This document shows positions 1-58,703 of a DNA stretch of 64,000 nucleotides, in pieces (positions within the stretch are counted from its first letter, which is position 1; every line of letters starts with the position of its first letter). The notes below the pieces were generated by a model, which worked only from the letters and a program-made list of their open reading frames with translations, did not search any database and was not told where the DNA came from. This stretch comes from Diplonema japonicum. Lineage: Eukaryota > Protista > Euglenozoa: Diplonemea. The DNA lies in the NCBI GenBank assembly GCA_964019335.1, contig OZ025650.1, positions 496,001 to 560,000 of the forward strand. The letters run 5' to 3'. Both the position numbers and the translations under genes were made by a program.

Positions 1-6
1 AAGAGC

Positions 7-99
7 TCAGTGGTCAGGACAAATTGCAGTTACTGTCGTCAGGAACGAGTGTTTCCGACTGAGAGATCAGGTATTTGATAACTTACAGGTTGTCATCAG
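7..99 (-). ncRNA. box C/D snoRNA family H
   Basis: Minus strand: TGATGA...internal CTGA...CTGA with terminal stem AGAGC/GCTCT. A near-identical copy at 55378-55470 is conserved only between the boxes. Confidence 0.8.
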
Positions 100-330
100 T
101 GCTCTGTAGTTTCCTTTGTTTGATGTCTCAAAATGATTTTCGAGTATCTTGTCGGGCAAGGAGGTGCAATAAGAATAATAAAAAAAAGGGGGTTGACGAA
201 ACGGGGGGTATTTTTTTTTTTCTTATTTTTTTTTTTGTTCTTTGATTCTCACTCAGAATCTTGGGGTTGGGAGCCAGTTATTGGGGATTGCAATCGTTGG
301 GTGAGGGAGTCATAACGATCAACCTACTTC

Positions 331-1812
331 CTACTTCTTCTTGGCGATGACCTTCTCGGTGGTCTTGGTGACCTTGCCAAGCATGACGACACCGTTGCCC
401 TCCATGATGGCGACACGGGAGAGACCCTCGCAGTTCTTGAAGGTGTCGACGACAAGGGGCTGCTGGGGGGCGAAGACGACCTCAGCCATCTCGTTGGCCT
501 TCAGGCAGTGGGGCTCCTCAGCCTTCTTACCGCCGGTCTCCTTACCCATCTTCCACACCAGCTGGGTCATCCTCACGGCGGACCTACCGGTCCTCACGAA
601 GCACACGGGGGTGTACCCGACCTTGAGCTCACCGGGGTGGTCCAGGATCTGCACCTGCGCGTTGAAGGTACCGGCCTCCTTCAGGGAGGCGTCCTTCTTG
701 TAGATCATCACGTCACCGGTCCTGGGCATGTTGTCCTTGTTGAGACCCTTCACGTTCAACCCAACGTTGTCACCAGCCTTGGCGTCCTCGCACCTCTTGT
801 GGTGCATCTCGCAGGTGAAGACCTTACCCACGCACGCGTTGGCGGCGGTGTGGGTGGGGAGGAAGAGCACTTCCTCACCGGGCTTCACGATACCCTGCTC
901 CACACGACCGGTAATAACATCACCGACACCCTTGATCTGTATTTATTTGTGTGTGCGTGCGTGTGCGTGTGTTGTTTATTTTATTTCTATTTTGTTGTTT
1001 CATACCTTGTACACACCCGAGACGGGCATCCTCATGGGAGCGTCGTTCTTCCTCTCAGGCATCCTCACCATCTTGTCAAGAGCGTCAACAAGGGTGTCGA
1101 TGTGGAGCTTCTCGTCAGCACCGACAAGAACATCCTGACCCTTCCACCAGTCCATCTTGGTGGACTTCTTCAGAAGGTTGTCACCGATCCAACCCGAGAT
1201 GGGGAGGACGGGGACGTTCTTCTCAACGAAGTCCTTCTTCCAACCGGTCTTCACCAACATGCTCTTCATCTCCTCCTTGATCTCGTTGTACCTCTCCTCC
1301 TTGTACTGGGCGACGTCGCAGTCCATCTTGTTGATACCAACGATGAGCTGCTTCACACCGAGAAGGTTGATGAGACGGGCGTGCTGCCTGGTCTGCCCCT
1401 GGATCTCACCAGCCTTGTGGTTACCCCTCGCGATGGCGGACACGAAGTTACCGTCAGCGGGGATCATCAGAAGGGCCACGTCGGCCTGCGAGGCTCCGGT
1501 GATCATGTTCTTGATGAAATCCCTGTGCCCGGGGGCGTCGATCACGGTGTAGTGCCACTTCTCCGTGAAGAACTCCTTGGTGGTGCAGGCGATCGTCACA
1601 CCACGCTCACGCTCCTCCTTCTGCCTGTCCATGTAGAAGGCGAAGGCGAAGGACTGCTTACCGAGACGCTCAGCCTCAGCCTTCAACTTCTCCATCTCAC
1701 GCTCGGGGATTCCACCAAGCTCGAAGAGGAGACGCCCGGTGGTCGTCGACTTCCCGGAGTCGACGTGACCGCAGATCACGATCGACAAATGCTGCTTACC
1801 GTCGGTGGCCAT
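331..1812 (-). CDS. EFL: elongation factor-like GTPase EFL, copy 1 (exons 1006-1812 and 331-936; 470 aa)
   Basis: [14 protein letters not shown] and NKMD motifs plus EFL-type signatures ([33 protein letters not shown]). Removing the 69-nt GT-AG intron 937-1005 restores YK|IKGVGDV. Confidence 0.95.
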
Positions 1813-1829
1813 GGTTTATGAGTTGATAG

Positions 1830-1885
1830 CTGTCGGGGGGTGGGTGGATGGATGGATGGATGGGTGGGTGGGTGGGTGGGTGGTG
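1830..1885 (-). promoter_or_regulatory. putative SL trans-splice acceptor of EFL with (CCCA/TCCA)n tract
   Basis: Minus strand (CCAC/CCAT)n CCCCCGACAG ends 17 nt before the ATG; same arrangement in all three EFL copies. Confidence 0.55.
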
Positions 1886-1954
1886 ATGGTTTTCTTTCTT
1901 TTTTTTTTTTCCCCCTCCCTTCTCACTCCAAAAAATTTACTGCAAATAATTTCT

Positions 1955-2033
1955 TCAGCGTTTATCAAATATCATCCCCAGTTTGCCTGCAAAGCAGTCA
2001 AATAAGCTACTCTTATCGTGTTTGGATCATCAC
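1955..2033 (-). ncRNA. box C/D snoRNA family A
   Basis: GTGATGA...GATGAT...CTGA, 79 nt; three copies; target not recognised. Confidence 0.75.
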
Positions 2034-2091
2034 AAGAATTCAAAAGCAAGCCAAAAGAAAACCAAGGCAAAGAGAGTCACCCATCAATGAA

Positions 2092-2161
2092 AGTTCTAGG
2101 ACAAGAAATGATGAGCTGAAGTAGGTAGCGAAGCACAGTCACAACTCGAGGCATTGTCCAG
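2092..2161 (-). ncRNA. single-hairpin AGA-box pseudouridylation guide, family 1 isoform a
   Basis: Stem GGACAA/TTGTCC, pocket TGCCTC + ATCATTTC, then AGA. The pocket fits the conserved LSU motif AAUGAU-UA-GAGG. Confidence 0.85.
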
Positions 2162-2235
2162 TGAAAACTATTCCGCAAAGAAAAACAGACGGAAAAAGGG
2201 GTTGGAGGTACAGACATAAACAACAATACAAAGAA

Positions 2236-2316
2236 TCAGATAAGAAACCGAAATACAAAGATTATAACTCACGAAAGTATTCATGTGAAACACGGAACAT
2301 TGTACTTTTTCATCAT
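2236..2316 (-). ncRNA. box C/D snoRNA family B (LSU UGAAACACGGA guide)
   Basis: ATGATGA...TCCGTGTTTCAC-ATGA (D')...CTGA; the guide is antisense to conserved LSU CUUGAAACACGGACC. Confidence 0.85.
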
Positions 2317-2347
2317 CTCTTTGAGGGGTGGCATTGTGTCTCCTGTC

Positions 2348-2414
2348 TGATCTTGGAACAGGGAGTATACTGTTGGCAGCATGGGTGACCCCGCCACAGA
2401 GCTGTTTGTTCCCT
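2348..2414 (-). ncRNA. single-hairpin AGA-box guide, family 2
   Basis: Stem GGAACA/TGTTCC + A-AGA. Pocket CAGCT + ACTCCC fits LSU GGGAGU-UU-GGCUG. Four copies in the window. Confidence 0.8.
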
Positions 2415-2479
2415 CTTGGAGGGGAAAGCCTTCAAAAGGAAAAAGCAACGAAAGAAGCCCTAAAAAAGCTGTAAAAGGT

Positions 2480-2570
2480 TCAGCGGTGTCCTAAGGGTAA
2501 TTAAGTTGCCATTTCTCGGGCATCGCACCTTGTGCTCCGACTGGGGCGGCATCATAGTGATTGTCATCAT
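2480..2570 (-). ncRNA. box C/D snoRNA family C (dual LSU guide)
   Basis: ATGATGA...CTGA; guides TGCCGCCCCAG and CCTTAGGACACC are antisense to neighbouring conserved LSU motifs CUGGGGCGGCA and GGUGUCCUAAGG. Four copies. Confidence 0.9.
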
Positions 2571-2642
2571 CTAGTAGAGGAAAGAAACAGTCAAAGGAAA
2601 CAGTCCCCCTTCCCGCACCTGGGAAAACACAGGTTTGTGTGG

Positions 2643-2729
2643 TCAGGTAAAACCCGAAAGTCAACTTCACACAGCAAAAAAAATAATGCATCAGGTCTTG
2701 AAACACATTGTGGAAAGTAATGTCATCAC
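2643..2729 (-). ncRNA. box C/D snoRNA family D
   Basis: GTGATGA...GTGTTTCAAGAC-CTGA...CTTTCGGGTTTTAC-CTGA; antisense to LSU GUCUUGAAACAC and ACCCGAAAG. Confidence 0.9.
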
Positions 2730-2771
2730 TTCAACTCCTTCTCATTCATGTTAAATGTTTCCCTCATGCAA

Positions 2772-2842
2772 ACCTCTCGAACAAGAAATGATGAGCTTGA
2801 GGTAGGTAGCGAGGCGCAGTCACAGCTCGAGGCATTGTCCTG
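2772..2842 (-). ncRNA. single-hairpin AGA-box guide, family 1 isoform b
   Basis: Same pocket as 2092-2161 with diverged but pairing-compatible stems; AGA at 2775-2777. Confidence 0.85.
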
Positions 2843-2890
2843 AAGACTTTCTTCCTGTGTGTCTTGCAGACACAAAGTAAAAGGAAGGTT

Positions 2891-2957
2891 GTGTCTTGCC
2901 ATGAAGTTGCCCTTGCAGTGCGAGAAGGGGCGTCCTGCAGGTTTGATCGTCATGGCG
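2891..2957 (-). ncRNA. single-hairpin AGA-box guide, family 3
   Basis: Stem GCCATGA/TCATGGC + A-AGA, upper stem TGCAG/CTGCA; target not recognised. Confidence 0.75.
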
Positions 2958-3008
2958 GAAAGTGAATGGAAGTGTACGAAACAAACGGAACGGGGCAACT
3001 AGGGCCAC

Positions 3009-3080
3009 AGCTCTTGCCCGAGTCATTGACCTGCAGTGGCGATGTCGAAGACTGCGCCCAGAGGCTGGTTACCAAGGGCG
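3009..3080 (-). ncRNA. single-hairpin AGA-box guide, family 4
   Basis: Stem GCCC/GGGC + A-AGA, upper stems CCT/AGG and GCAGT/ACTGC. Identity with the copy at 54679-54750 ends at the hairpin base. Confidence 0.65.
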
Positions 3081-3116
3081 GGTAAGAAACAATAACTTCT
3101 GCGTCTTCCTGGTTGC

Positions 3117-3206
3117 TCAGAAGTTGTGAAAGCTTTATCAAGAGTGTTGTATTCAGCCGGAGGCCTCGTGGCCCCGTCGTATAGTACCGATCCTGTTTCT
3201 CATCAT
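3117..3206 (-). ncRNA. box C/D snoRNA family E
   Basis: ATGATGA...CTGA (D')...TTGATA...CTGA; three copies with differing flanks. Confidence 0.8.
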
Positions 3207-3294
3207 CGCAGGTGGCAGGGGGGGAGAGGGAAAGAAAGCTGGATCCATTTCCGGGGGATGAGGAAAAACTATGAACAACAACAACAAACAAGAG

Positions 3295-3385
3295 TCAGCC
3301 TCCTCGACCTATTCTTTGGGTGCTCATCTCCCAGGGGTTTCCTGGAATGCACAGAGATTCCTTGTGTAAAAACAAAAATCATCAT
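3295..3385 (-). ncRNA. box C/D snoRNA family F (LSU CUCGACCUAUUCU guide)
   Basis: ATGATGA...AGATGA...AGAATAGGTCGAGGAGG-CTGA; antisense to the conserved LSU motif YUCRACCUAUUCU. Three copies. Confidence 0.85.
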
Positions 3386-3465
3386 TTGTTTGCTCTCCTG
3401 CTGTAGTTCGTGTAGTTTGTTCTTCTTTTCTTTTTTTCTTCCCTCTCCTCTTCCTTTTCAACTAT

Positions 3466-3640
3466 TTATGTAGGACCACACCAAGGCACACAAAAGACAC
3501 ATGGAAGGAAGTGAAGGTGTGCTGGTTAAATGTGGTTCTGAGCTTTGCTGTTGCGTGCGTTGAAAAGGGAGGGCGGGATCTTTTGCTTCTCCCCAACAGA
3601 GTGTGCGGAGACCCATCCCTCCCAAACCTGTCGCCACGCG
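3466..3640 (-). ncRNA. two-hairpin box H/ACA RNA
   Basis: Hairpin 1, H box ACAGCA (3546-3551), hairpin 2, then ACA (3469-3471). The pocket tops lie 15 and 14 nt from their boxes. Compensatory G-C to A-T change versus the copy at 55156-55330. Confidence 0.8.
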
Positions 3641-3696
3641 TCCGGGAGTGCTGCTGCTGGTGGTAGCGGTGGCGCTTCGGAAGCAAAGTGGTCAAC

Positions 3697-3763
3697 TCAT
3701 CTTGGAACAGGGAGTATACTGTTGGCAGCATGGGTGACCCCGCCACAGAGCTGTTTGTTCCCT
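3697..3763 (-). ncRNA. AGA-box guide family 2, additional copy
   Basis: Identical to 2348-2414 over the hairpin only. Confidence 0.8.
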
Positions 3764-3811
3764 CGCTCTTCTTTTTCTTTTTCTTTCTCTTCTCTCACCA
3801 TTGATCAGAAG

Positions 3812-3904
3812 TCAGGTAGGGTGTTCTTGGAATCGTTGCTCAACAAGTGATTGTTTGAAGATCTTCAGATTGGCTAGGGCGGTAGAATTCCAGGTTGTCA
3901 TCAC
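3812..3904 (-). ncRNA. box C/D snoRNA family G
   Basis: GAAG-TGATGA...CCGCCCTAGCCAAT-CTGA...CTGA-CTTC with terminal stem. The D' guide pairs LSU UUGGCUGGGGCGG with one G-U. Confidence 0.85.
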
Positions 3905-3935
3905 TTCAATAGGAGCTTTGGTGACAAAATAAAAG

Positions 3936-4015
3936 TCAGCTAGGGGCGAAAGAACAAAGTCACATTGTCTAGTAATTCAACAGAAATGATTTGTTAAAAT
4001 TGTTCAAATCATCTT
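3936..4015 (-). ncRNA. box C/D snoRNA family I
   Basis: Variant C box AAGATGA; D' guide AATCATTTCTG-TTGA; D guide TCTTTCGCCCCTAG-CTGA is antisense to conserved LSU UAGGGGCGAAAGA. Confidence 0.8.
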
Positions 4016-4204
4016 GTCCCCCCCCCCCCCCCCCCCCCTTCTCGCAATCAAGTAAAAATAATATAAATTAGAATAGGCTAAACCAAGGATAGTAAATCGA
4101 TAGGAGTAACGTTAAGAAAAAAAGGGGGGAGAGGGGGGAAGGGGGATTAAAACATAATGGGAACAGCTGCAGATTAGAGAAATTAAAAGGAAATAAAAAA
4201 AAAT

Positions 4205-4360
4205 TTGCGCTCACCGCATTAGTGAGATACCTCGTCCTGTCCCCCGAGTGCTCGACCCATAATAAAAGCTAACCTTTGTGCCATCTGGCCCTTTAAGGCT
4301 TCGTAGGGCTAACTGTATGTCGTCAACCTATTCCAGTTTAGCTACAAAGAATGGGTCTCC
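4205..4360. mobile_element. short structured element, possibly a non-autonomous Helentron-like element (HINE)
   Basis: Inverted repeat GACCCAT..AGCTAA / TTAGCT..ATGGGTC plus terminal hairpin CTCAC/GTGAG next to an A/T run. Confidence 0.3.
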
Positions 4361-4788
4361 AAGAAACCAAGAAAAAGAAGGGGAGAAAGGGGATGGGGGG
4401 GGGGGGGGGGTAGAAGAAACCAATTTCATTTCTATTCACGTTGCTTTGATCGTGCCACCTTTCCCTATTCCGTCTTCCTCCTATTTCTTTCCTGTTAAAG
4501 GAAAGAAAGAAGAGGGAAATAAAATATAGAAAAAAAAAAGGAGAACACGACACCAAAAGAGAAGACGTGCATCGTTTTAGCCTTTTGCTGAACGCGTAAA
4601 AACAAGCTCAACTTTTTTTTTATGGTACATTTTTTTTTTTTTTTTTTTTTCTGGCTTAGTGTTTCCTCGTGTCTCTCCATTTTCTATATCTTTCCATTCT
4701 GTGCTTGTTAAAAAAAAAAAAAGAAAAACTCCTCACAACGAAAAACAAAAACCAGCAGATTTTTTTATGTTGCCACGTCCCCCGTTAA

Positions 4789-5949
4789 CTAAAATACAAC
4801 GCCCCATGTCCCCGACACAGGGTGGTAGGTGAGGTGGGTGAGGGAGCAATTCTTCACAGTGTGCTGGAAGGGTTTGTGGCCGAGGATGGACCTCACGAGG
4901 GCGGAGATGACACCACCATGTGTGACGACCGCTATGTGCTGCCCTAAGAAGGAGGCGTCCTTGAGGGAACACAGGGCACGAAGCGCCACGTCTCGGGCAG
5001 ATTCACCATTTGGCCATCTCTTTGTGTGGTTAAGAGACCGCATGAAGGTGCGCACTGCAGGGTCAGTTGACATGCAACCCTCGAAGCTGCCTAAACTAAT
5101 CTCCATCAAACGCTCGTCCACCACATGCTCACCAGGCAGCTCCTCTTCAGGGAACATGAGAGATGCAGTGTCCATAGCCCGCTGCAGCGGTGACACAAGA
5201 ACAGCATCTATCCCGTCAGGAAGGACGAGGCCTGCCCGTGCCTCCGACGCTTGCCGCATCCCGCGATCGGTAAGAACTGTGTCCTTCTGCCCTTGCAGCC
5301 GCCCGATGACGTTCCAGTTGGACTCGCCATGCCGCACCACGTAGTAGTGCACGAGACCCTTGTCGGGGACCTTCCGACCTCCTTTCTTCCGCGACGCCGA
5401 CAGCACCGCCTCAACAGGGCACCACAGGTACTTTCCATCGCCAAACATTATTTTCATCGTCCCGTCCTCTGCGCATACTTCCTGGACTGTTCCCTTCTTC
5501 CCTAGATATGAGAGGACTGCTTGGTTCCATTCCAAAGTGTCGTGTGAGGTGTACGTGTTGTGGACGAGCGTCTCGTCGGCTTCAAGGCTGACCCACTCCC
5601 CTACCGTGTATGTTGTCTTTTGGAACCCTGTGTTCGATGACAGCGGGGAGTAAGGGTTCAGGTGTTGTTGCTGCTGCTGCTGCCGCTGTCTTTTCCGTTC
5701 CTTCTTGCTCGCTGAGGAGTCACGCGAGCTGTTGCTGTCCCAGCTGCCCGACGAGGCGCTGAAGGAAGGGTTGCGGTCGCTCAGGGTGAGGCACTGAGGT
5801 GTCTCTTGTTTTTCACAGAGCGGTTTCACGTACCCTTCACCGCTGCTGCTCCCGCCGCATTCTTCATCAGCGTACTCATTCCACTGCAGAAATGTGATCC
5901 GTCCCTTGTTGTTCCCTTTGGTCTTTTTTTGCCTCACACCAGGGGTCAT
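4789..5949 (-). CDS. histidine phosphatase (phosphoglycerate mutase family) with Mind-bomb-like SH3 repeat
   Basis: RHGES, SPLQRA, LMEISLG, GES and VTHGG motifs; the upstream VGEWV...W...LGKKGTV...W.P segment resembles the Mib SH3 repeat. ATG at 5949 follows a CAG. Confidence 0.85.
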   Translation of the reverse strand: MTPGVRQKKTKGNNKGRITFLQWNEYADEECGGSSSGEGYVKPLCEKQETPQCLTLSDRNPSFSASSGSWDSNSSRDSSASKKERKRQRQQQQQQHLNPYSPLSSNTGFQKTTYTVGEWVSLEADETLVHNTYTSHDTLEWNQAVLSYLGKKGTVQEVCAEDGTMKIMFGDGKYLWCPVEAVLSASRKKGGRKVPDKGLVHYYVVRHGESNWNVIGRLQGQKDTVLTDRGMRQASEARAGLVLPDGIDAVLVSPLQRAMDTASLMFPEEELPGEHVVDERLMEISLGSFEGCMSTDPAVRTFMRSLNHTKRWPNGESARDVALRALCSLKDASFLGQHIAVVTHGGVISALVRSILGHKPFQHTVKNCSLTHLTYHPVSGTWGVVF

Positions 5950-6022
5950 GTTAAGTGTCTGAGGATGGAGTATCAAGTAGTGGGATTGAAAGGAAAAAAG
6001 AAAAAAACCCCTCTCATGCTAC

Positions 6023-7229
6023 CTAAATAGCATTTCCCCCGATTTTCTGGTCCAACCCGTACCGGTGCTGCAACATCTCCCGTTGCTCTCTTTCAAGATC
6101 CAACCTCTTCCGCAGGGAAGGATTGAACTCCAGTATTTCCCGTCGTTGTTGTAAAAGCTGTTTTTTTTTTTTTTTTTTTTTTTTTTTTCTGCTTCCCATT
6201 CTCATCTTCCTTTCACACACCATCGGATGGACGTATTTCTGCTGGTACCACAGCAAACCAACTCCAACAGAGGTTATTCCTATACTTGAGGACAGGAACG
6301 CTACCCACACCTTTATCTGTTTTTTTTTTTTTTTTTTTTTTTTCATTTAACTCCATCAAAATTTCCGTGGATGGGAGTGAAAATAAAAATTCACTTTATT
6401 TTCACGCTCCGGCTTCTAAAAGAAATTAGGCCCAGGAGTGAAAAAATTCTGATAGCGTTAAAATAAGAAATATTATTTCACTCCTGGGCCTAATTTAAGC
6501 AAAACCCTCCAAGAATTCTTACCAAGGTTCCTTTGGGATAGGCAAGAGCCCGACTGCACAAGAGGCGGACGCAGCAGGGTTCACCCCCTTCCAAGAGCCA
6601 TACGAAAAGGAGTGGGCACGCTTTTGTGTTTCATAATTATAGGAAGGAAAAGAAGGGCCCGTCCGAAAGAAGAGGATTCTATTCTCTAGTTCAACGACAT
6701 GAAGCAAGGCCTGCTGCCCGTTCAGTCCGGGCGGCTTATTCAAGGCTAAACTCGGTTGTGAGGAGGAATTACAACAAGCAGTTGCAAAAGGTCCCCCTCA
6801 AGAGGTTCCAAGAAGGCGAGTCAACAAAAAAGGCGAACATCTTTACCCAAGAGCAAATGACAGAATTCTTTAGCACCGAGGTATGGCATCGTCCGCCACG
6901 CTAAACATGTGCACTACCGAGGCACATATCCGACACCTGTTGTAATTGGTACCACCTGTACCTCCCACCCACTCAAATTCTGCTGTCGTTAAATAAAATA
7001 TCGTATTTGTGAATATAAGATTGATGATTTCACTTGTGGTGGCAGTTTTGACTCGTTAAACGTTATAACACTCGCTTCGCTCGTGATATAACCGTCACTC
7101 GTCAAAACCACTGCCACCACGCGTGAAATCATAGGATCTTATATTCACTAAATAAATAGTTATTTTTTTTTTCCCCGTTTCCTTTCTTCCTTCGTCACAT
7201 ACATGAACTTCTCTAGTCATCGGCGCCAT
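6023..7229 (-). CDS. small single-TM protein (about 85 aa; exons 7203-7229, 6221-6316, 6023-6157)
   Basis: Phase-0 GT..CAG joins give MAPMTREVH|IKVWVAFLSSSIGITSVGVGLLWYQQKYVHPM|LLQQRRE...GNAI and remove both poly-A (poly-Lys) runs. Confidence 0.55.
6350..7160 (+). mobile_element. decayed Crypton-like (tyrosine recombinase) element
   Basis: Left hairpins (AAATTAGGCCCAGGAGTGAAA inverted repeat) and a right imperfect palindrome of about 150 nt centred on ACTCGCTTCGCTCGT. Frameshifted peptides YEKEWARF and YSRLNSVV...LKRFQEGESTKKANIFTQEQMTEFF resemble the N-terminal part of CryptonI-type recombinases. Confidence 0.65.
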
Positions 7230-29585: not shown

Positions 29586-32190
29586 CTATTTGGAGCCCTT
29601 TTCCTTTTTAACCGCTGGTCTTGCTGTTACTTCCTGCAGCACAACATCGAAGTAGACGTCAGAGGGATGCGTCACGCCATCGATAACAACAGCGTCCAGC
29701 TTAAAGCCTGCCTTCTGGAGGCGCTCGGTGTATTCCTTCTGCGCAGTTGTCACGTTCTCCTGCACAACCACCGCCATGCTGTTTCGCACCGCCTTTGTTG
29801 TCTTGTGATAGCAGTAATGCTGTGATGTGTGTTAGTTCCAAGAAGTGCGGCATACCTTGCCGGCCTTCTCCGCGTTGGCCCATATCTTCCTCTTCAGCAG
29901 GTCTGCAGCGATGGCCTCTGCATCGACGAGATCCGTGTCGAGGATGCTTGCACAGACTTCACCCCGGTATGTCTCGTAGGTGAGGACACCCTTGCTCTTG
30001 TCCCAGTATTCCCCCCAGTTCTCCGTATTACGTAGTTTTATCTTGCTAAACTCCTCAGGTTTCTCCACTGGGACTTCCACAGCTGCGGGCGTCACTGGCT
30101 GAGGTTGCCGAACAGCAAGTGTCGCCACTGGTGGGGTTGCGGCTTCGGCAACAGGAGACAAGGTTGGTGTGGGCACCGTCGTTGCGTGAGCCACAGGAGC
30201 AGCAGTAACGAACTCTTCCTGAGCATGTTCATGTTCTGGGATGCTCTTCTTTACATCTTCTTCTTCTATGTCTTTAAAGAGATCCACGCTAACGAGCTCA
30301 GGTTGCCTATCCGGCGTATCTGCTTCCTGTACAGAAAACGCTGGTTGGGCGACTTCCGGCGACTGAGGAGGCTGCTTTCTCATAGAAACGGGCGAAGGTG
30401 AGACTGTACTGGGGAGCTGCGTCGACGGAGTGTTCTGGCGCTCGAGTGTCTGCGTGTGACTTTCTTGTTGTACAATTGACTACCTACCTTAAAAAGAGGA
30501 GGCGAACCTGCGTTGGGGCTTGCCGGAGCGTGCCTTGACAGTGGGCGTGCTGTGGTTATTTCTAACGGTCTTGGCTAATACCTGGTGGGGTGCTGCGCTG
30601 CGGTTCCGACACACTGCCACACCTCTCCTCAGACCTCCTGGGGACATCAGCCTGTTGAGTTTTCCACGCCTAGCTGCACTAGATGCATACCTTATACGAT
30701 GGGGGTGGGCTGTCGAGTGTCTCTCTCGCCTGCTTCGCAATTGTTTGCACTGGTGCTGCAAGTGCAGGAGACGCAGACACTACTGCCGGTGACGACACGG
30801 AAGAAGGGATTGACGAGATAGGTGCCCTCACAGGGCTTGGAGACGATCTGTTAATAGGCTCTGGGGACGAAATGGGAGCGATCTGCTTGCGAGTGTATGT
30901 GTCGCTTGCAGCAGCGACTGGCGGTGAGATGTTGGGAGGGGATGTGGCAACTGGCTTGAAGCCCAGCTGCTCAGGTGACAGGATTGCAGGGGGGAGGCTT
31001 CTAATGTTTGATGACATTGCATCCACGTTGGGGGACAGGCTTCTCAGGTGATTGGGGGACACTGAAGCAGGTGGTGGGATGCTACCAATGGGTGGCGGCC
31101 GCACCTGACGGGGCGACGTCGGTGGTGAGTCCAAACCAATGCGCAAGCGACGCTGGCTTGGAGATTCTGCCTTCGGCGACACAGGAGGTGATTGTCTTGG
31201 AGACTTCAGGGTGTAACTACGTGTCGCAGCAGGGGGCACCTTCGGAGGTGAGTAGTTCCTTCCCAAAAGAGGGCGCTCACATGACCTCGATCGCAGACGC
31301 TCCATCTCCAACAACTTTGTCAACTCTTTCGCCTTTTGGTTTGTTTCCGCGAGTTGTCTTTCCAGCTCAGCTTCTTTGTTGCCCATGGAAGGGGCCCGCC
31401 TGCTGAACGTTGGTGACGATGCCGTGGGGAGCGTGGAGGGTGGCGGTGCCTGGATTTGTGCTGCGGCAACAACAGGAACTGGTGAGGCTGACATGTCTTT
31501 TGCTGCTACCTCTGCCTCTGTTCGCAGCCTCCGCACCCCATCTTCGTCGATAAGCCACCAACTACCCATCAGCACAGTGCTGTCGCCATCGTATTTAGAC
31601 TCGAGTCGTGCGTTCTTCCCCGTCACGACGTCTATCACATCAAGGCCTCCCTTGAGCTTCACTGGGGCCGTCATGGTGATCTTGGCAACACCCTTCGACC
31701 CGTTGTAGCTGTTGATGTAGGTTCCGATGAAAGTGGAGGGCGAGACCTTCTCGACATGGATGCAGCTTATGGCGCCGATGGCCCAGTGTAGGTTGAAAGA
31801 TGCTCTTGGGTGCTTATAGCTGCCGCTCAGTGTGAAGTGTTGATTACTGACTACAGCGGTGCCCGTTAGCTCACCCGAACGGATGTTGTGGTTGATGTGC
31901 AAAGGATACTTCACGGGCTCCATGCTGCCGTCCTCACGGGACTCTAAATGCCACACTCCACAGATGTCTGTAAACGGTGTCTCAAGGGGGTTCCCGTCTT
32001 TGGGTGGAGATCGTGATCCTGTCCTCACAGGCGATACGTACTGTTTCTCTGCTAGCGTTTTCTTAATCTCTTCCTTTAACCATTGCGTTTGCCCTGTCAA
32101 AGGGTTTCCTTCGCTAAGATTCTCTTGCCTCTCTTGCACTTCAGCTAGCCTCGTGTTCAAGGAGACAGGTGGACTCATAGACTTTTGCAT
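29586..32190 (-). CDS. Pro/Ser-rich hypothetical protein; introns 30652-30690, 30550-30581, 30450-30487, 29820-29855
   Basis: Four short introns join ORFs 30679-32190, 29832-30383 and 29586-29789 into one frame. Confidence 0.75.
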
Positions 32191-44215: not shown

Positions 44216-44263
44216 GTACACCTGTGATGCGTGTATGCGGAAGGAAATTGAAAAAAATTACTC

Positions 44264-47760: not shown

Positions 47761-47908
47761 CTAACCTTGGTGTTGTTTATGGAACGGGTTATAAAGATTA
47801 AAAAAAAAAAACAAAAGGGCTAGCAAATCAATTTTCTGATGCATTATTATCATATTTACATGCAGCAAGAGGGGAATACGAAAAGGTGTACCGGCACTAA
47901 TCTCAAGA

Positions 47909-50369: not shown

Positions 50370-50492
50370 CTATTCAACGCACATCGTATCTGTGGTGGGT
50401 TGGCGGGTTGACGAAAAGGGTGAAAATAAAGGAAGCTTTGGAGGATCTCCAAGGCAATGTACTAAACTAACTGCAAGTTCTGCCTCTTAATC

Positions 50493-51918
50493 TCAATCAT
50501 ACTTCCTGCGCTTGTCATGGTCACTCGAAGACGAACGACGACGCTGTGTGTGTGTGTGAAGTGCTATTGTTGCATACCTTTCTCTCGGAGGCGTCTGCCT
50601 TCACGTCATCAAGGATGGCGTCCATTCCGAAGGGGTCCTCTTCTCTGGTGCTCTCGAACTCAATGCTCCTCATGGGGTCCGACTTCCCCTCTTGTTTTCT
50701 GTGTTCTGCGTCGAGTTGTTCACGGTTCGCCTTGAATTGCGATTGCTTCCTATCGTTCTTGCTGAGAAGAGATTTTGTATAAGCGTTTCCCTCACCTTCC
50801 GTGTCCTCCAAGTTGCTGCCCAAGCCCCCGTTCCCCTGGTTGAACAACCTTTGGTCCAAGTAAGAGTCACCTCCGCCACCCCCACTACCTAGGCCGAGAG
50901 CCATCCTTTCACCCACGTCACGCTCTCCATCCTTGTCTCTTGCACCCCCTGATGCTTTGTGTGCTGCAATCCTCCTTTCGTGTTCCCACTTCCTTCTCCT
51001 CTCCTCACGCACTTCGTTTCTTTTCCTCTCCTCATCAACTTCTTCCCATGTCATGTCTTCGTTCTTTCTGGCTTCCTGCAGTTCGCTCCACTGTTCCCTG
51101 GCCTTGATTGCGTTTTCCTTCATCTTCGATTCGCTCTTCTCCTTTGCCTTGAGAGCCTTCTTCTTATTCACGGCTATCCTCTTCTCCACCTGCTCCCTCA
51201 TCGTCGTTTCTGCCGTCGTCATAGCTGTCGAGAACGATGCGAATTTAGGATTGATCTGCGCCTCCTGCAGGCCTCTGCCGTCTGCAGCAAGACGCTTATC
51301 TAAGGGAATGACATAGCCCTTTGGGTTTTTCCAGTTTGAGATGCACGGCGGGACTTTCCATTCCTGCATGTCCTCCATCTTGAGCTTTCTCTGAGGAGAG
51401 TGGAGTACAGGTGCTGGGGGAGAAGGAGGCCCCCCAGGCACTCTCTGCACACGAAACTTTGATGGCTCCAGAGGGTCCTTTTGTTGCTCAACCATCTTTA
51501 CCATTCTCCCCTGTACTTTTTCGCCGCCGCCCACTGTCTCACTGGGATTGTACCTGAAGTACGTTGCTCCGTTGTTCGCCTCTGGACCTTGTGGTGTTAT
51601 GGAAGCAATCTTGCCAGAGATTCTCGCCTCAAGTGCCTTTCTTGCCTTTTCATTAGCATCGTCCAGCTCCTCTTCGCATGGCCTGCTCAAGTCATTGTCC
51701 TCATAGTCTTTTGGAATGAGGTCGCTGAACTTGCTATACACTGTGACGCCTTCCGCGACGCCTTGTTCCGCGACGGCCGTTGATTGAATATTTCCACTGC
51801 TGTCCGTCGTCACTGCCAACGCGTTGCTTTTCCTGTCCGGTCTGCCAATGTCCAAAGGATACTGCAGCTCGTGTATTTCAGGAAAGGCGCCCCCGTCCCC
51901 ATGATTAAACCCCACCAT
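50493..51918 (-). CDS. SNW1: splicing factor SKIP/SNW1/Prp45; intron 50544-50577
   Basis: GDGGAFPEIH, DPLEP, SPPAPVLHSP and SNWKNPKGY..PLDKRLAADGRGL motifs. Confidence 0.93.
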
Positions 51919-51988
51919 GTTATGCCTGTGTGATTGTGGAGTATCAATAAAACAAAACAAATTCAGATAGGAATGACATGCAAGGTTT

Positions 51989-53470
51989 CTACTTCTTCTT
52001 GGCGATGACCTTCTCGGTGGTCTTGGTGACCTTGCCAAGCATGACGACACCGTTGCCCTCCATGATGGCGACACGGGAGAGACCCTCGCAGTTCTTGAAG
52101 GTGTCGACGACAAGGGGCTGCTGGGGGGCGAAGACGACCTCAGCCATCTCGTTGGCCTTCAGGCAGTGGGGCTCCTCAGCCTTCTTACCGCCGGTCTCCT
52201 TACCCATCTTCCACACCAGCTGGGTCATCCTCACGGCGGACCTACCGGTCCTCACGAAGCACACGGGGGTGTACCCGACCTTGAGCTCACCGGGGTGGTC
52301 CAGGATCTGCACCTGCGCGTTGAAGGTACCGGCCTCCTTCAGGGAGGCGTCCTTCTTGTAGATCATCACGTCACCGGTCCTGGGCATGTTGTCCTTGTTG
52401 AGACCCTTCACGTTCAACCCAACGTTGTCACCAGCCTTGGCGTCCTCGCACCTCTTGTGGTGCATCTCGCAGGTGAAGACCTTACCCACGCACGCGTTGG
52501 CGGCGGTGTGGGTGGGGAGGAAGAGCACTTCCTCACCGGGCTTCACGATACCCTGCTCCACACGACCGGTAATAACATCACCGACACCCTTGATCTGTAT
52601 TTATTTGTGTGTGCGTGCGTGTGCGTGTGTTGTTTATTTTATTTCTATTTTGTTGTTTCATACCTTGTACACACCCGAGACGGGCATCCTCATGGGAGCG
52701 TCGTTCTTCCTCTCAGGCATCCTCACCATCTTGTCAAGAGCGTCAACAAGGGTGTCGATGTGGAGCTTCTCGTCAGCACCGACAAGAACATCCTGACCCT
52801 TCCACCAGTCCATCTTGGTGGACTTCTTCAGAAGGTTGTCACCGATCCAACCCGAGATGGGGAGGACGGGGACGTTCTTCTCAACGAAGTCCTTCTTCCA
52901 ACCGGTCTTCACCAACATGCTCTTCATCTCCTCCTTGATCTCGTTGTACCTCTCCTCCTTGTACTGGGCGACGTCGCAGTCCATCTTGTTGATACCAACG
53001 ATGAGCTGCTTCACACCGAGAAGGTTGATGAGACGGGCGTGCTGCCTGGTCTGCCCCTGGATCTCACCAGCCTTGTGGTTACCCCTCGCGATGGCGGACA
53101 CGAAGTTACCGTCAGCGGGGATCATCAGAAGGGCCACGTCGGCCTGCGAGGCTCCGGTGATCATGTTCTTGATGAAATCCCTGTGCCCGGGGGCGTCGAT
53201 CACGGTGTAGTGCCACTTCTCCGTGAAGAACTCCTTGGTGGTGCAGGCGATCGTCACACCACGCTCACGCTCCTCCTTCTGCCTGTCCATGTAGAAGGCG
53301 AAGGCGAAGGACTGCTTACCGAGACGCTCAGCCTCAGCCTTCAACTTCTCCATCTCACGCTCGGGGATTCCACCAAGCTCGAAGAGGAGACGCCCGGTGG
53401 TCGTCGACTTCCCGGAGTCGACGTGACCGCAGATCACGATCGACAAATGCTGCTTACCGTCGGTGGCCAT
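51989..53470 (-). CDS. EFL: EFL copy 2 (intron 52595-52663)
   Basis: Translation identical to copy 1; same intron. Confidence 0.95.
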
Positions 53471-54749
53471 GGTTTATGAGTTGATAGCTGTCGGGGGGTG
53501 GGTGGATGGATGGATGGATGGATGGATGGATGGGTGGGTGGGTGGGTGGGTGGTGATGGTTTTCTTTCTTTTTTTTTTTTCCCCCTCCCTTCTCACTCCA
53601 AAAAATTTACTGCAAATAATTTCTTCAGCGTTTATCAAATATCATCCCCAGTTTGCCTGCAAAGCAGTCAAATAAGCTACTCTTATCGTGTTTGGATCAT
53701 CACAAGAATTCAAAAGCAAGCCAAAAGAAAACCAAGGCAAAGAGAGTCACCCATCAATGAAAGTTCTAGGACAAGAAATGATGAGCTGAAGTAGGTAGCG
53801 AAGCACAGTCACAACTCGAGGCATTGTCCAGTGAAAACTATTCCGCAAAGAAAAACAGACGGAAAAAGGGGTTGGAGGTACAGACATAAACAACAATACA
53901 AAGAATCAGATAAGAAACCGAAATACAAAGATTATAACTCACGAAAGTATTCATGTGAAACACGGAACATTGTACTTTTTCATCATCTCTTTGAGGGGTG
54001 GCATTGTGTCTCCTGTCTGATCTTGGAACAGGGAGTATACTGTTGGCAGCATGGGTGACCCCGCCACAGAGCTGTTTGTTCCCTCTTGGAGGGGAAAGCC
54101 TTCAAAAGGAAAAAGCAACGAAAGAAGCCCTAAAAAAGCTGTAAAAGGTTCAGCGGTGTCCTAAGGGTAATTAAGTTGCCATTTCTCGGGCATCGCACCT
54201 TGTGCTCCGACTGGGGCGGCATCATAGTGATTGTCATCATCTAGTAGAGGAAAGAAACAGTCAAAGGAAACAGTCCCCCTTCCCGCACCTGGGAAAACAC
54301 AGGTTTGTGTGGTCAGGTAAAACCCGAAAGTCAACTTCACACAGCAAAAAAAATAATGCATCAGGTCTTGAAACACATTGTGGAAAGTAATGTCATCACT
54401 TCAACTCCTTCTCATTCATGTTAAATGTTTCCCTCATGCAAACCTCTCGAACAAGAAATGATGAGCTTGAGGTAGGTAGCGAGGCGCAGTCACAGCTCGA
54501 GGCATTGTCCTGAAGACTTTCTTCCTGTGTGTCTTGCAGACACAAAGTAAAAGGAAGGTTGTGTCTTGCCATGAAGTTGCCCTTGCAGTGCGAGAAGGGG
54601 CGTCCTGCAGGTTTGATCGTCATGGCGGAAAGTGAATGGAAGTGTACGAAACAAACTGAACGGGGCAACTAGGGCCACAGTTCTTGCCCGAGTCATTGAC
54701 CTGCAGTGGCGATGTCGAAGACTGCGCCCAGAGGCTGGTTACCAAGGGC
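51989..54749 (-). repeat. direct repeat of about 2.75 kb (EFL + proximal snoRNAs), matching 331-3080
   Basis: Near-perfect identity apart from 12 extra nt of TGGA microsatellite and two visible substitutions near 54657-54681. Confidence 0.9.
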
Positions 54750-56022
54750 TGCCAAAAAAAAAGTAGGAACAAGCAATGCAGGAATGAAACCTTTTTGTGC
54801 TTTCAAAAAGTTACAAAACTTGCTCAGAAGTTGTGAAAGCTTTATCAAGAGTGTTGTATTCAGCCAGAGGCCTCGTGGCCCCGTCGTATAGTACCGATCC
54901 TGTTTCTCATCATCGCAGGGTGGCTGCGGAAGTCAGGAGGGAGAGGGAAAGAAAAACCTGATAAACTATGAACAACAAACAAGAGTCAGCCTCCTCGACC
55001 TATTCTTTGGGTGCTCATCTCCCAGGGGTTTCCCGGGATGCACAGAGATTCCTTGTGTAAAAACAAAAATCATCATTTGTTTGCTTTCCTGTTGCAGTTC
55101 GAGAACTTTTTTATTTCTTTTATGCTTTTCTTTTTTTTTCTTCTCATTCAACTATTTATGTAGGACCACACCAAGGCACACAAAAGACACATGGAAGGAA
55201 GTGAAGGTGTGCTGGTTAAATGTGGTTCTGAGCTTTGCTGTTGCGTGCGTTGAAAAGGGAGGGCGGGATCTTTTACTTCTCCCCAACAGAGTGTGTGGAG
55301 ACCCATCCCTCCCAAACCTGTCGTCACGCGTAGTACCTCTGACTGGAGAAGAGTTGGTCTGCCGCGGTGCACTTTGCTCAGTGGTCAGGACAAATTGCAG
55401 TTACTGTCGTCAGGAACGAGTGTTTCCGACTGAGAGATCAGGTATTTGATAACTTACAGGTTGTCATCACTGCGTTGCGTTCATTGCATAGATTAAGTAT
55501 GAATGGTTCGTCTGCCACGTCCGCCACCGGAGGAGGTGGTTGGTTTCGCCAGAGGCGTAACTACACAACTGATGCGCGCAGCACGTTGGAAGATGCAGCA
55601 CCACAATTGCAAATAAGAAGGCTGTTATTGTTCCCCTGCAAAAAGTTCAGCGGTGTCCTAAGGGTAATTAAGTTGCCATTTCTCGGGCATCGCATCTTGT
55701 GCTCCGACTGGGGCGGCATCATAGTGATTGTCATCATCTTTCCGTCGGGGTATGGAAGGAGGTAGGATTCTTTTTTTTTATTGCTCAGAAGTTGTGAAAG
55801 CTTTATCAAGAGTGTTGTATTCAGCCGGAGGCCTCGTGGCCCCGTCGTATAGTACCGATCCTGTTTTTCATCATCGCAGGGTGGCTGCGGAAGTCAGGGA
55901 GAAGAGAAAAAACAAAAAAGAAAAACTTAAAAGAGTCAGCCTCCTCGACCTATTCTATATATGCTCATCTCCCAGGGGTTTCCTGGGATGCACAGAGATT
56001 CCTTGTGTGGAATAATCATCAT
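53625..56022 (-). ncRNA. snoRNA cluster 2: C/D-A 53625-53703, AGA-1a 53762-53831, C/D-B 53906-53986, AGA-2 54018-54084, C/D-C 54150-54240, C/D-D 54313-54399, AGA-1b 54442-54512, AGA-3 54561-54627, AGA-4 54679-54750, C/D-E 54824-54913, C/D-F 54986-55076, H/ACA 55156-55330, C/D-H 55378-55470, C/D-C 55647-55737, C/D-E 55785-55874, C/D-F 55936-56022
   Basis: Box-to-box sequence matches to the cluster at 1955-4015 and to 7-99. Confidence 0.85.
55156..55330 (-). ncRNA. two-hairpin box H/ACA RNA, copy 2
   Basis: Matches 3466-3640 with a compensatory pair change (55275/55296). Confidence 0.8.
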
Positions 56023-56338
56023 TTACTTGTTTCAAAATGCATTTCATCAACTAGTGGTCACTGGTTATCAACTAGTGGTATCACTTGAAGGCGCAGTTGC
56101 CTAGCAAGCTCCCTCAGTCACTTGATCAACATCAGATCACGCGTAGAGTTGTTGTCTGTATGAAATGAGTGGAGAAGCAAGTTGCTCAGTCAATAAAGAT
56201 GATAAACTAGGGAGGAGGTTGGTGGGTGGGGTAACTTCGGGTTAAAATCAGTTTGTAACATCTTGGTAGATGATTACATTTCCAGGAGCGTAATAAGAAC
56301 AGAGGGTACAATATACAAGATTTGCTATTGCAAGGTTT

Positions 56339-57820
56339 CTACTTCTTCTTGGCGATGACCTTCTCGGTGGTCTTGGTGACCTTGCCAAGCATGACGACAC
56401 CGTTGCCCTCCATGATGGCGACACGGGAGAGACCCTCGCAGTTCTTGAAGGTGTCGACGACAAGGGGCTGCTGGGGGGCGAAGACGACCTCAGCCATCTC
56501 GTTGGCCTTCAGGCAGTGGGGCTCCTCAGCCTTCTTACCGCCGGTCTCCTTACCCATCTTCCACACCAGCTGGGTCATCCTCACGGCGGACCTACCGGTC
56601 CTCACGAAGCACACGGGGGTGTACCCGACCTTGAGCTCACCGGGGTGGTCCAGGATCTGCACCTGCGCGTTGAAGGTACCGGCCTCCTTCAGGGAGGCGT
56701 CCTTCTTGTAGATCATCACGTCACCGGTCCTGGGCATGTTGTCCTTGTTGAGACCCTTCACGTTCAACCCAACGTTGTCACCAGCCTTGGCGTCCTCGCA
56801 CCTCTTGTGGTGCATCTCGCAGGTGAAGACCTTACCCACGCACGCGTTGGCGGCGGTGTGGGTGGGGAGGAAGAGCACTTCCTCACCGGGCTTCACGATA
56901 CCCTGCTCCACACGACCGGTAATAACATCACCGACACCCTTGATCTGTATTTATTTGTGTGTGCGTGCGTGTGCGTGTGTTGTTTATTTTATTTCTATTT
57001 TGTTGTTTCATACCTTGTACACACCCGAGACGGGCATCCTCATGGGAGCGTCGTTCTTCCTCTCAGGCATCCTCACCATCTTGTCAAGAGCGTCAACAAG
57101 GGTGTCGATGTGGAGCTTCTCGTCAGCACCGACAAGAACATCCTGACCCTTCCACCAGTCCATCTTGGTGGACTTCTTCAGAAGGTTGTCACCGATCCAA
57201 CCCGAGATGGGGAGGACGGGGACGTTCTTCTCAACGAAGTCCTTCTTCCAACCGGTCTTCACCAACATGCTCTTCATCTCCTCCTTGATCTCGTTGTACC
57301 TCTCCTCCTTGTACTGGGCGACGTCGCAGTCCATCTTGTTGATACCAACGATGAGCTGCTTCACACCGAGAAGGTTGATGAGACGGGCGTGCTGCCTGGT
57401 CTGCCCCTGGATCTCACCAGCCTTGTGGTTACCCCTCGCGATGGCGGACACGAAGTTACCGTCAGCGGGGATCATCAGAAGGGCCACGTCGGCCTGCGAG
57501 GCTCCGGTGATCATGTTCTTGATGAAATCCCTGTGCCCGGGGGCGTCGATCACGGTGTAGTGCCACTTCTCCGTGAAGAACTCCTTGGTGGTGCAGGCGA
57601 TCGTCACACCACGCTCACGCTCCTCCTTCTGCCTGTCCATGTAGAAGGCGAAGGCGAAGGACTGCTTACCGAGACGCTCAGCCTCAGCCTTCAACTTCTC
57701 CATCTCACGCTCGGGGATTCCACCAAGCTCGAAGAGGAGACGCCCGGTGGTCGTCGACTTCCCGGAGTCGACGTGACCGCAGATCACGATCGACAAATGC
57801 TGCTTACCGTCGGTGGCCAT
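56339..57820 (-). CDS. EFL: EFL copy 3 (intron 56945-57013)
   Basis: Translation identical to copies 1 and 2. Confidence 0.95.
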
Positions 57821-57974
57821 GGTTTATGAGTTGATAGCTGTCGGGGGGTGGGTGGATGGATGGATGGATGGATGGATGGATGGGTGGGTGGGTGGGTGGG
57901 TGGTGATGGTTTTCTTTCTTTTTTTTTTTTCCCCCTCCCTTCTCACTCCAAAAAATTTACTGCAAATAATTTCT

Positions 57975-58597
57975 TCAGCGTTTATCAAATATCATCCCCA
58001 GTTTGCCTGCAAAGCAGTCAAATAAGCTACTCTTATCGTGTTTGGATCATCACAAGAATTCAAAAGCAAGCCAAAAGAAAACCAAGGCAAAGAGAGTCAC
58101 CCATCAATGAAAGTTCTAGGACAAGAAATGATGAGCTGAAGTAGGTAGCGAAGCACAGTCACAACTCGAGGCATTGTCCAGTGAAAACTATTCCGCAAAG
58201 AAAAACAGACGGAAAAAGGGGGGTGGAGGTACAGACATAAACAAACCGAAATACAAAGATTATAACTCACGAAAGTATTCATGTGAAACACGGAACATTG
58301 TACTTTCTCATCATCTCTTTGAGGAGTGGCTTTTCTTCTTTTTTTTCCACATGTTGTCTCCTGTCCCGACCCTTTTTGGAATCTTGGAACAGGGAGTATA
58401 CTGTTGGCAGCATGGGTGACCCCGCCACAGAGCTGTTTGTTCCCTCTTGGAGGGGAAAGCCTTCAAAAAGCAACGAAAAGCCCATCGTAAAAAGCTGTAA
58501 AAAGGTTCAGCGGTGTCCTAAGGGTAATTAAGTTGCCATTTCTCGGGCATCGCACCTTGTGCTCCGACTGGGGCGGCATCATAGTGATTGTCATCAT
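57975..58597 (-). ncRNA. snoRNA cluster 3: C/D-A 57975-58053, AGA-1a 58112-58181, truncated C/D-B, AGA-2 58379-58445, C/D-C 58507-58597
   Basis: Matches the proximal members of clusters 1 and 2. Confidence 0.85.
58243..58314 (-). pseudogene. C/D-B snoRNA copy lacking its D box
   Basis: A 23-nt deletion relative to 2222-2244 removes CTGA. Confidence 0.65.
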
Positions 58598-58703
58598 CTA
58601 AGGAGCGATCCAGAAGAGTTCTTCCCCAAAAACGTCTCTTGTCTGTATGAGCAGGTAAAAGTAAAATAGAACTACTATAAAACTGTTAAGGTGTTTAGAA
58701 AGG

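Follow-up and report, generated by a model that had tools for sequence, protein, structure and literature searches.

What ties a gene for a translation elongation factor to an array of small nucleolar RNA (snoRNA) genes? The question is raised by a 64,000-nt stretch of contig OZ025650.1 of Diplonema japonicum (C3:496001-560000; C-numbers are contig labels of the same genome), hereafter the window, in which three copies of EFL, encoding an elongation factor-like GTPase, lie downstream of tandem units resembling guide RNAs for ribosomal RNA (rRNA) modification. The original prediction, made from the letters of this stretch, held that each EFL copy carries its own upstream guide array and that the two were amplified together, coupling ribosome modification to elongation-factor dosage. 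We compared the units with the organism's rRNA, traced clusters and EFL through the genome, and examined assembled transcripts. The units have the predicted properties of genuine guide genes, and clusters were duplicated together with EFL, but the linkage is neither obligatory nor exclusive. Probably, these are ordinary polycistronic snoRNA clusters of the euglenozoan (trypanosomatid/Euglena) type, present in a diplonemid and spread with neighbouring genes by segmental duplication.

Units upstream of EFL carry predicted guides to the organism's own rRNA

As the original prediction had it, box C/D units and hairpins ending in AGA or ACA follow one another along the DNA upstream of EFL, on the EFL strand; the intervals match, and so does a further unit at 5-102 (Table 1). 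In cluster A, which precedes EFL copy A, the units measure 70-175 nt and make up ∼67% of the DNA, every one of them on the EFL strand. CD1 to CD8 each have a C box (RUGAUGA) and a D box (CUGA) 79-100 nt apart; CD9 has both boxes too. Terminal stems of 4-5 bp are present in CD1, CD2, CD7 and CD8, versus only 1-3 bp in CD3-CD6. AGA-a, AGA-c2 and AGA-d fold as a single hairpin with a pocket, followed by AGA 1-2 nt past the lower stem.

Complementarity was scored against the small-subunit (SSU), 5.8S and large-subunit (LSU) rRNAs of D. japonicum itself, whose rDNA unit has an unfragmented LSU; the same has been reported in diplonemids and prokinetoplastids (PMC9082867). A guide was counted where 11 nt or more of exact rRNA complementarity ended 0-2 nt before a CTGA box, with 21 reversed or shuffled rRNAs and the opposite strand as controls. 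Thirteen of 42 minus-strand CTGA boxes had such a guide (4/12, 7/22, 1/2 and 1/6 in the four regions), versus a mean of 0.00-0.05 per region for the 21 control rRNAs and none for the plus strand, which bears out the expectation of guides matching the organism's own rRNA. The remaining 48 kb of the window gave one guide versus 0.5 expected, and a guide-like match at 30650 was set aside: it has no C box, and the count equals chance expectation. Across C3:446.5-560 kb, 38 guides lie on the minus strand versus 2 on the plus strand. When G-U pairs were allowed, at least one guide exceeded the control maximum in 9 of the 10 C/D units and two did so in 4 of them; those of CD2, for example, scored 12.5 and 13 versus a control maximum of 9.5. 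CD4 had no above-control guide at any recognisable box in this test.

Among the hairpin units, the AGA-c family has LSU U1077 as its predicted target, by way of a bipartite guide (9+6 or 7+6 nt) at 15 nt from AGA; controls yielded ∼0.1 match per region. AGA-c2 is only 87% identical to AGA-c1 and retains this guide. The pocket strands of AGA-d (GAUCAAA/GCAAC, 7+5 nt) match LSU U2980, 14 nt from the box, with a score of 12 that by itself is not significant. For AGA-a and AGA-b, no target was found in the organism's rRNA, and a relaxed, structure-free search for pseudouridylation targets of AGA-a, AGA-b and AGA-d did no better than with shuffled rRNA. No Rfam family reached its gathering threshold in the window; a permissive scan returned sub-threshold likeness alone (CD7 to snoR4a, 25 bits; CD6 and CD2 to snR67, 21 and 16 bits), which we considered unusable. 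Given the predicted pairing at canonical D/D′ and AGA spacing, we take the units to be genuine rRNA-modification guide genes, with ∼20 concrete predicted sites of rRNA methylation and pseudouridylation as a result.

The claim that units are conserved while spacers diverge held for one part of the cluster. In the distal, older part, units of clusters A and B are 95-98% identical, versus 27-65% for spacers. The proximal 1.2 kb together with EFL is 100% identical between A and B; because this includes the spacers, that part says nothing about unit-versus-spacer conservation.

A run of ∼26 G and one of ∼17 C (minus-strand reading; 4020-4045 and 4395-4415) border the distal edge of cluster A. The 4020-4045 region looks like a recombination or assembly hot spot, because many alternative DNA junctions of X19, a source-like run, begin at 4037-4043.

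Clusters and EFL were duplicated together, but not in all copies

The coding sequences of EFL A, B and C are identical, each with one 69-nt GT-AG intron. Their domains (PF00009, PF03144, PF03143 and PF22594) form an EF-1alpha-type set. In a homologue search the closest named relative was from Diplonema papillatum (84% identity), and proteins of Perkinsus, the dinoflagellate Cladocopium and green algae were ∼70-72% identical. The latter are lineages that we take to use EFL and not EF-1alpha (Gile et al. 2009). Judged by domain set and closest relatives, the protein is an EFL-type GTPase. The two exons were kept separate in these analyses: the search for copies used exon 1, and the homologue search used a stop-free frame from C87 that runs through the intron.

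The genome contains at least 14 EFL copies with an identical exon-1 protein, six on C3 (447999, 478575, 484976, 497003, 548661 and 553011, the complete set for this contig), five on C87, and single ones on C15, C19 and C6. Amplification of cluster and EFL as one unit, as originally proposed, is upheld on C3, where the combined module is found in five of six copies. Two further sites, C3:447999 and C3:484976, carry it with 99% identity over 3.6 kb, and the proximal block of A equals that of B. The sixth copy, C3:478575, comes after a kinesin gene and has only 32 nt of upstream sequence in common with the module. The proposal that every EFL has its own upstream array did not survive the genome-wide comparison, since a cluster lies upstream in 5 of 14 copies. 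The eight copies on C87, C15, C19 and C6 resemble those of the window from ATG to stop only (91.5-95% DNA identity). Upstream of the C15, C19 and C6 copies (∼5 kb searched) and of C3:478575, the scan detected no guides, which leaves 4 of 14 copies with no detected snoRNAs; the upstream spacer of the C15 copy is just 136 nt.

On C87, the five copies belong to a different module, consisting of ∼110 nt of 5′ flank, EFL, and 0.4-0.7 kb of 3′ flank with other C/D snoRNAs. These have guides to LSU 2195-2206 or LSU 730-742 and lie downstream of EFL. Neither the flanks nor the snoRNA families are related to those of the C3 module. The C87 snoRNA units also occur at several EFL-distant sites of that contig, and one unit also on C32 and C111, where there is no EFL.

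Two other readings were rejected. Retrocopying of EFL does not fit, as all EFL copies align across the intron region and none appears intron-less. Nor are the snoRNAs hosted in a cis-spliced intron: the sole EFL intron contains no unit, and the units lie upstream of the spliced-leader (SL) acceptor described below.

Several further features of the EFL loci were seen. The homology of the module ends ∼8 nt past the stop codon (323-333, 51981-51991 and 56331-56341). EFL A, B and C have identical 5′ flanks and unrelated 3′ untranslated regions (UTRs), B and C having only 10 nt of 3′UTR in common; this leaves room for post-transcriptional control specific to each copy. The polypyrimidine tract at 1832-1900 (also 53490-53570 and 57840-57920) is a (CCCA)n(CCAT)n microsatellite, 12 nt longer in B and C than in A. 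Exon-1 protein from C87 is 100% identical to that of the window copies despite a DNA difference of 5-8%, a sign of strong purifying selection. The frame is open across the intron region in four of the five copies on that contig, giving open frames of 551-584 aa. A ∼50-nt C/D-like unit (CUGAUGA ... CUGA), present on C87 and again on C32 and C111, lacks any rRNA complement reaching 10 nt and is a candidate orphan guide. C87 also has a ∼70-nt dispersed element (304026-304116), found at 86-97% identity on at least 10 contigs, including C85, C91, C60, C105, C53, C82, C108 and C97; it shows neither C/D nor AGA features and is not complementary to rRNA.

The same clusters precede other genes

DNA of cluster A has ∼100 genomic matches, nearly all on the minus strand of C3:345-555 kb, plus eight copies of a single, CD2-related unit on C84. 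About eight sites at C3:345-376 kb and several at 400-409 kb are EFL-free, lying at least 38 kb from any EFL. Within C3:446.5-560 kb, clusters are found at 449.5, 459.8, 486.5, 491.2, 494.7, 498.5, 550.1 and 554.0 kb. Those at C3:459.8-461.4 and 491.2-492.9 kb precede a gene for a DEAD-box, eIF4A-like helicase, all three copies of which lie among clusters on C3. That at C3:494.7-496.0 kb, whose first unit is CD9 and which runs past the window start, precedes an orphan gene of 425 aa (C3:493284-494561). All four copies of the orphan gene (65-100% identity) lie between snoRNA clusters on C3; it has no Pfam family and no relative of solved structure, and Atlas gave sub-threshold leads only. EFL itself is often flanked by clusters on both sides, A by those at 494.7-496.0 and 498.5-499.9 kb and C by those at 550.1-552.1 and 554.0-554.6 kb. 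Thus, the cluster is the recurring element, and the adjoining gene varies. Specificity for EFL is thereby lost, an outcome that the original prediction had itself named beforehand as refuting: the same cluster families precede the eIF4A-like and orphan genes and recur where there is no EFL.

All long credible open reading frames (ORFs) of the window are on the minus strand. Between the EFL copies, they encode Na/Ca exchangers, a kinase, a carboxypeptidase, kinesins, a metacaspase, an M81 peptidase, a cyclase, an SNW/SKIP protein and a histidine phosphatase, which have no functional kinship with one another. This is the appearance of a one-directional gene array of the polycistronic type. A search of the window for tRNA genes gave none. 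Cluster C begins ∼100 nt past the stop of the upstream 1761-aa ORF (58600-58704), so the 3′UTR of that ORF would be very short or overlap the first snoRNA. Elsewhere in the genome, partial pieces of SSU rDNA, 260-590 nt long, occur away from the rDNA array (C37:500460-501050, C78:225662-226071, C80:201742-202018, C18:611890-612361 and C34:455893-456158).

Table 1. Guide units and EFL genes of the window, in window coordinates. Guides and methylated nucleotides (Nm) are predicted; WC, Watson-Crick pairs; GU, G-U pairs; MFE, minimum free energy.
Feature	Position	Strand	Description
snoRNA cluster A	1952-4016	minus	15 units: 8 box C/D, 6 AGA-box hairpins, 1 two-hairpin H/ACA candidate
CD1, box C/D	3934-4016	minus	13-nt D guide to LSU 972-984 (Nm G975); terminal stem 4 bp
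CD2, box C/D	3803-3906	minus	D′ guide to LSU 2724-2736 (Nm G2727); D guide to LSU 2709-2724 (Nm C2712)
AGA-a1, single hairpin then AGA	3697-3766	minus	Paralogue of AGA-a2 (2345-2417)
Two-hairpin H/ACA candidate	3466-3640	minus	175 nt; H-like ACAGCA between hairpins, ACA near 3′ end; MFE -58.5, z -1.9; copy at 55156-55330, 98% identity
CD3, box C/D	3293-3387	minus	D guide, 15 WC + 2 GU, to LSU 1097-1113 (Nm C1101); score 16 vs control maximum 10
CD4, box C/D	3113-3211	minus	12-nt complement to LSU 2840-2851 behind C box; D′ box unclear
AGA-b, hairpin then AGA	3007-3084	minus	Fold less clean
AGA-d ('X')	2870-2965	minus	7-bp lower stem, internal pocket, upper stem, then AGA; z -3.8
AGA-c1, H/ACA-like single hairpin	2773-2848	minus	Bipartite 9+6 nt guide to LSU U1077, 15 nt from AGA; fold less clean
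CD5, box C/D	2640-2731	minus	12-nt D′ guide to LSU 709-720 (Nm U713); possible 9-11-nt D guide to SSU 754-764
CD6, box C/D	2478-2575	minus	D′ (CGGA) guide to LSU 2727-2738 (Nm G2731); 12-nt D guide to LSU 2760-2771 (Nm G2763); four copies within window
AGA-a2, single hairpin then AGA	2345-2417	minus	Repeated family in window
CD7, box C/D	2233-2322	minus	D′ (AUGA) guide to LSU 713-726 (Nm A716); terminal stem 5 bp
AGA-c2	2093-2169	minus	AGA-c1 paralogue, 87% identical, same LSU U1077 guide
CD8, box C/D	1952-2036	minus	13-nt D′ (CUUA) guide to LSU 2566-2578 (Nm U2570); terminal stem 4 bp
EFL A 5′UTR (∼17 nt), putative SL acceptor AG (∼1830-1829), polypyrimidine tract (CCCA/CCAT)n (1832-1900)	1813-1900	minus	From sequence and RNA contig ends
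EFL copy A	331-1812	minus	Exon 1 1812-1006, GT-AG intron 1005-937 (69 nt), exon 2 936-331; 470 aa
CD9, box C/D, downstream of EFL A	5-102	minus	D′ (CGGA) guide, 14 WC + 1 GU, to LSU 2289-2303 (Nm A2293); D guide, 11 nt, to SSU 1426-1436 (Nm C1429)
snoRNA cluster B	53622-∼56225	minus	∼17 units; fills spacer between EFL C and EFL B
Cluster B, first part	CD10 ∼56225-56130; CD3′ 56024-55934; CD4′ 55879-55781; CD6′ 55742-55645; CD9′ 55473-55376	minus	CD10: SSU C846
Cluster B, middle	H/ACA 55330-55156; CD3 55078-54984; CD4 54918-54820; AGA-b 54749-54677; AGA-d 54635-54540; AGA-c1 54518-54443	minus	
Cluster B, last part	CD5 54401-54310; CD6 54245-54148; AGA-a 54087-54015; CD7 53992-53903; AGA-c2 53839-53763; CD8 53706-53622	minus	
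EFL copy B	51989-53470	minus	Offset +51658 from A; coding sequence identical to A
snoRNA cluster C (short)	57972-58600	minus	5 units: CD6 58600-58505; AGA-a 58448-58381; CD7 58320-58240; AGA-c2 58189-58113; CD8 58056-57972
EFL copy C	56339-57820	minus	Offset +56008 from A; equals B over coding sequence and 88 nt upstream

Spliced-leader ends place the clusters outside the mature EFL mRNA

Transcript data consisted of assembled contigs (runs X1, X2 and X3), not reads. That these three RNA-like runs are RNA was shown by the spliced EFL intron (X3 record 25) and by SL ends. X1 and X2 contigs of the upstream histidine-phosphatase gene are ∼2% divergent from the window, so these two runs, at least, come from a close relative or strain. 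In X2 contigs, the sequence ...GCTACAGTTTCTGTACTTTATT(G) is attached at 5959, where the upstream gene has its 5′ end. The same sequence is attached 16 nt before an EFL ATG, on a 5′UTR that is exactly that of the C19 copy. We take it to be the spliced leader, because the genome contains this 23-mer 214 times and its reversal not once. The 214 genomic copies of this SL 3′ 23-mer are scattered on both strands, many of them within a few kb of contig ends, and do not form a single tandem SL-RNA array.

The SL-joined 5′UTR of the C19-type copy belongs to a high-depth EFL contig, hence a snoRNA-free copy is expressed. For the window-type UTR, an X3 contig matches up to 1828 and then continues with 18 further letters. 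This points to an SL acceptor AG for EFL A at ∼1830-1829, with a 70-nt polypyrimidine tract ahead of it and the ATG 17 nt further on. With the acceptor there, the snoRNAs are excluded from the mature EFL mRNA. Cluster A sits in the 2.9-kb spacer between the end of the upstream mRNA (∼4736) and this acceptor, and its last unit, CD8, is ∼120 nt upstream of the acceptor. RNA contig depth reaches hundreds to thousands over EFL (∼323-1830) versus 0-16 over the cluster. A single low-depth X2 contig (depth 2.6) covers CD2 and AGA-a1 (3722-3915); it is compatible with a polycistronic precursor but may be DNA carry-over. Because the long genes of the window are all on one strand, co-transcription of the cluster with EFL would be generic.

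Passenger duplication, functional linkage or decay

How might clusters and genes have come together? Under the probable account, that of ordinary euglenozoan-type clusters, C/D methylation guides and single-hairpin AGA pseudouridylation guides are mixed in clusters, sense-oriented in the spacers of a one-directional gene array. By analogy with trypanosomatids, the snoRNAs would be cut from an RNA polymerase II (Pol II) precursor that also gives the flanking mRNAs. Segmental duplication, unequal crossing-over and gene conversion between dispersed cluster copies may have produced the combined module, a gene between two clusters being copied along; such passengers would be EFL, the eIF4A-like helicase, the 425-aa orphan and a 299-aa ORF family on C87. 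Where genes lack transcription control of their own, co-amplification would raise the dose of guides and factor alike. A dedicated regulatory link between cluster and EFL is not supported, as nothing shows one. Some observations pull the other way. Eleven of 14 EFL copies have snoRNAs no more than ∼1 kb away; they fall into two regions (C3 and C87), whose flanks are unrelated and whose snoRNA families differ. About 24 other intergenic spacers of the window have no snoRNAs; across the few loci sampled, this linkage exceeds what pure passengers would give. The excess is at best borderline (rough Fisher 0.01-0.06, for ∼5 independent EFL loci in a non-random sample). The account also leans on an expression, ends and a processing route of the units that we infer, and on RNA contigs, not reads, from a strain or close relative ∼2% diverged.

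If cluster and EFL instead formed a functional expression unit, snoRNAs would be released from the outron, which is the part of the transcript ahead of the EFL trans-splice site, much as vertebrate snoRNAs are freed from introns of translation-related host genes; the linkage would be selected, and guide supply would scale with EFL dosage. Such a unit would make sense of the short stretch between CD8 and the EFL acceptor, filled by the polypyrimidine tract alone, of the homogenisation of proximal cluster and EFL into one 100%-identical block in A and B, of two unrelated EFL-snoRNA modules, and of a second passenger, the eIF4A-like helicase, that is a translation factor too. Among vertebrate snoRNA host genes, moreover, ribosomal-protein and translation genes are over-represented, EIF4A2/SNORD2 being one case (PMC13736004). 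We nevertheless consider this unlikely: four EFL copies have no detected snoRNAs, with the C19 type among the highly represented transcripts; on C87 the snoRNAs are downstream of EFL; the same clusters precede the orphan gene and recur at many EFL-free sites; every gene of the one-directional array would be co-transcribed with clusters; and no precursor joining snoRNAs to EFL exon 1 was seen in the RNA contigs. It is far less probable still that the units are decaying repeats or pseudogenes, dispersed debris resembling snoRNAs with no present function. The failure to reach any Rfam threshold, the want of a convincing rRNA target for AGA-a, AGA-b and the CD4 D guide, and the very low RNA-contig coverage of the units would suit debris. 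Yet guides at canonical box distance are far above controls and on one strand only, units have been kept at 95-98% identity versus 27-65% for spacers, diverged paralogues retain the same target, and snoRNAs are expected to escape poly(A)-type libraries.

A broader version of the linkage idea, which we hold to be doubtful, is that genes for translation factors (EFL and eIF4A-like) are non-randomly embedded in snoRNA arrays, at least two independent times (C3 and C87), as 'dosage cassettes'. If so, one duplication would scale rRNA guides and translation factors together, the guides being freed from the adjoining spacer or outron, and the cassettes would correspond, in a trans-splicing and polycistronic setting, to the snoRNA host genes of vertebrates.

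Comparison with known systems

Trypanosomatid snoRNA genes form mixed clusters of C/D RNAs with H/ACA-like ones, repeated several times and processed out of polycistronic Pol II transcripts, and the H/ACA-like type is a single hairpin bearing an AGA box (PMC2613932, PMC6562600). Single-hairpin RNAs of Euglena are also mentioned (PMC2613932). The D. japonicum clusters share with those of Trypanosoma brucei and Leishmania the mixture of C/D units and AGA single hairpins, repeats elsewhere on the same chromosome, sense orientation in presumed polycistronic Pol II units of an organism with SL trans-splicing, and spacing rules of 5 nt (D/D′) and 14-16 nt (AGA). They differ in that the duplicated unit takes in protein genes, giving mosaic 'cluster + gene' cassettes over >200 kb, and in having a two-hairpin H/ACA candidate among the single hairpins. 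Euglena gracilis reportedly has tandem repeats made up of snoRNAs only (Moore & Russell 2012), a comparison that serves here as a lead, not a test; its guide genes are likewise said to be tandem and densely packed, with polycistronic expression and frequent divergence of paralogues.

In vertebrates, translation genes such as EIF4A2 host intronic snoRNAs (PMC13736004). As there, rRNA guides of D. japonicum are physically linked to highly expressed translation genes, including those for an eIF4A-type helicase and the elongation factor, and such linkage has been interpreted as functional coupling. The D. japonicum units, in contrast, are in inter-gene spacers, many per spacer, and not in cis-spliced introns, and their linkage is neither obligatory nor specific.

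The EFL copies themselves recall another kinetoplastid feature. Highly expressed kinetoplastid genes (tubulins, EF-1alpha and HSP70) are carried in tandem arrays. As in these, there are many copies with identical coding sequence, the homology is sharply bounded by the coding region and the 3′ flanks are divergent, which fits dosage control by copy number. Unlike these, the D. japonicum repeats are dispersed among unrelated genes and not strictly head-to-tail, and the interleaved snoRNA clusters probably supply the recombination homology.

No published description of snoRNAs in diplonemids was found in the literature searched, and the present analysis gives a sequence-level picture of such genes in a member of this group. 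It indicates that this lineage shares trypanosomatid hallmarks (mixed clusters, AGA single hairpins and placement in polycistronic-type arrays). Their presence fits, without proving, an origin before the split of diplonemids and kinetoplastids. It also suggests a mechanism of amplification, in which dispersed snoRNA clusters would act as recombination substrates and carry along neighbouring genes in high demand.

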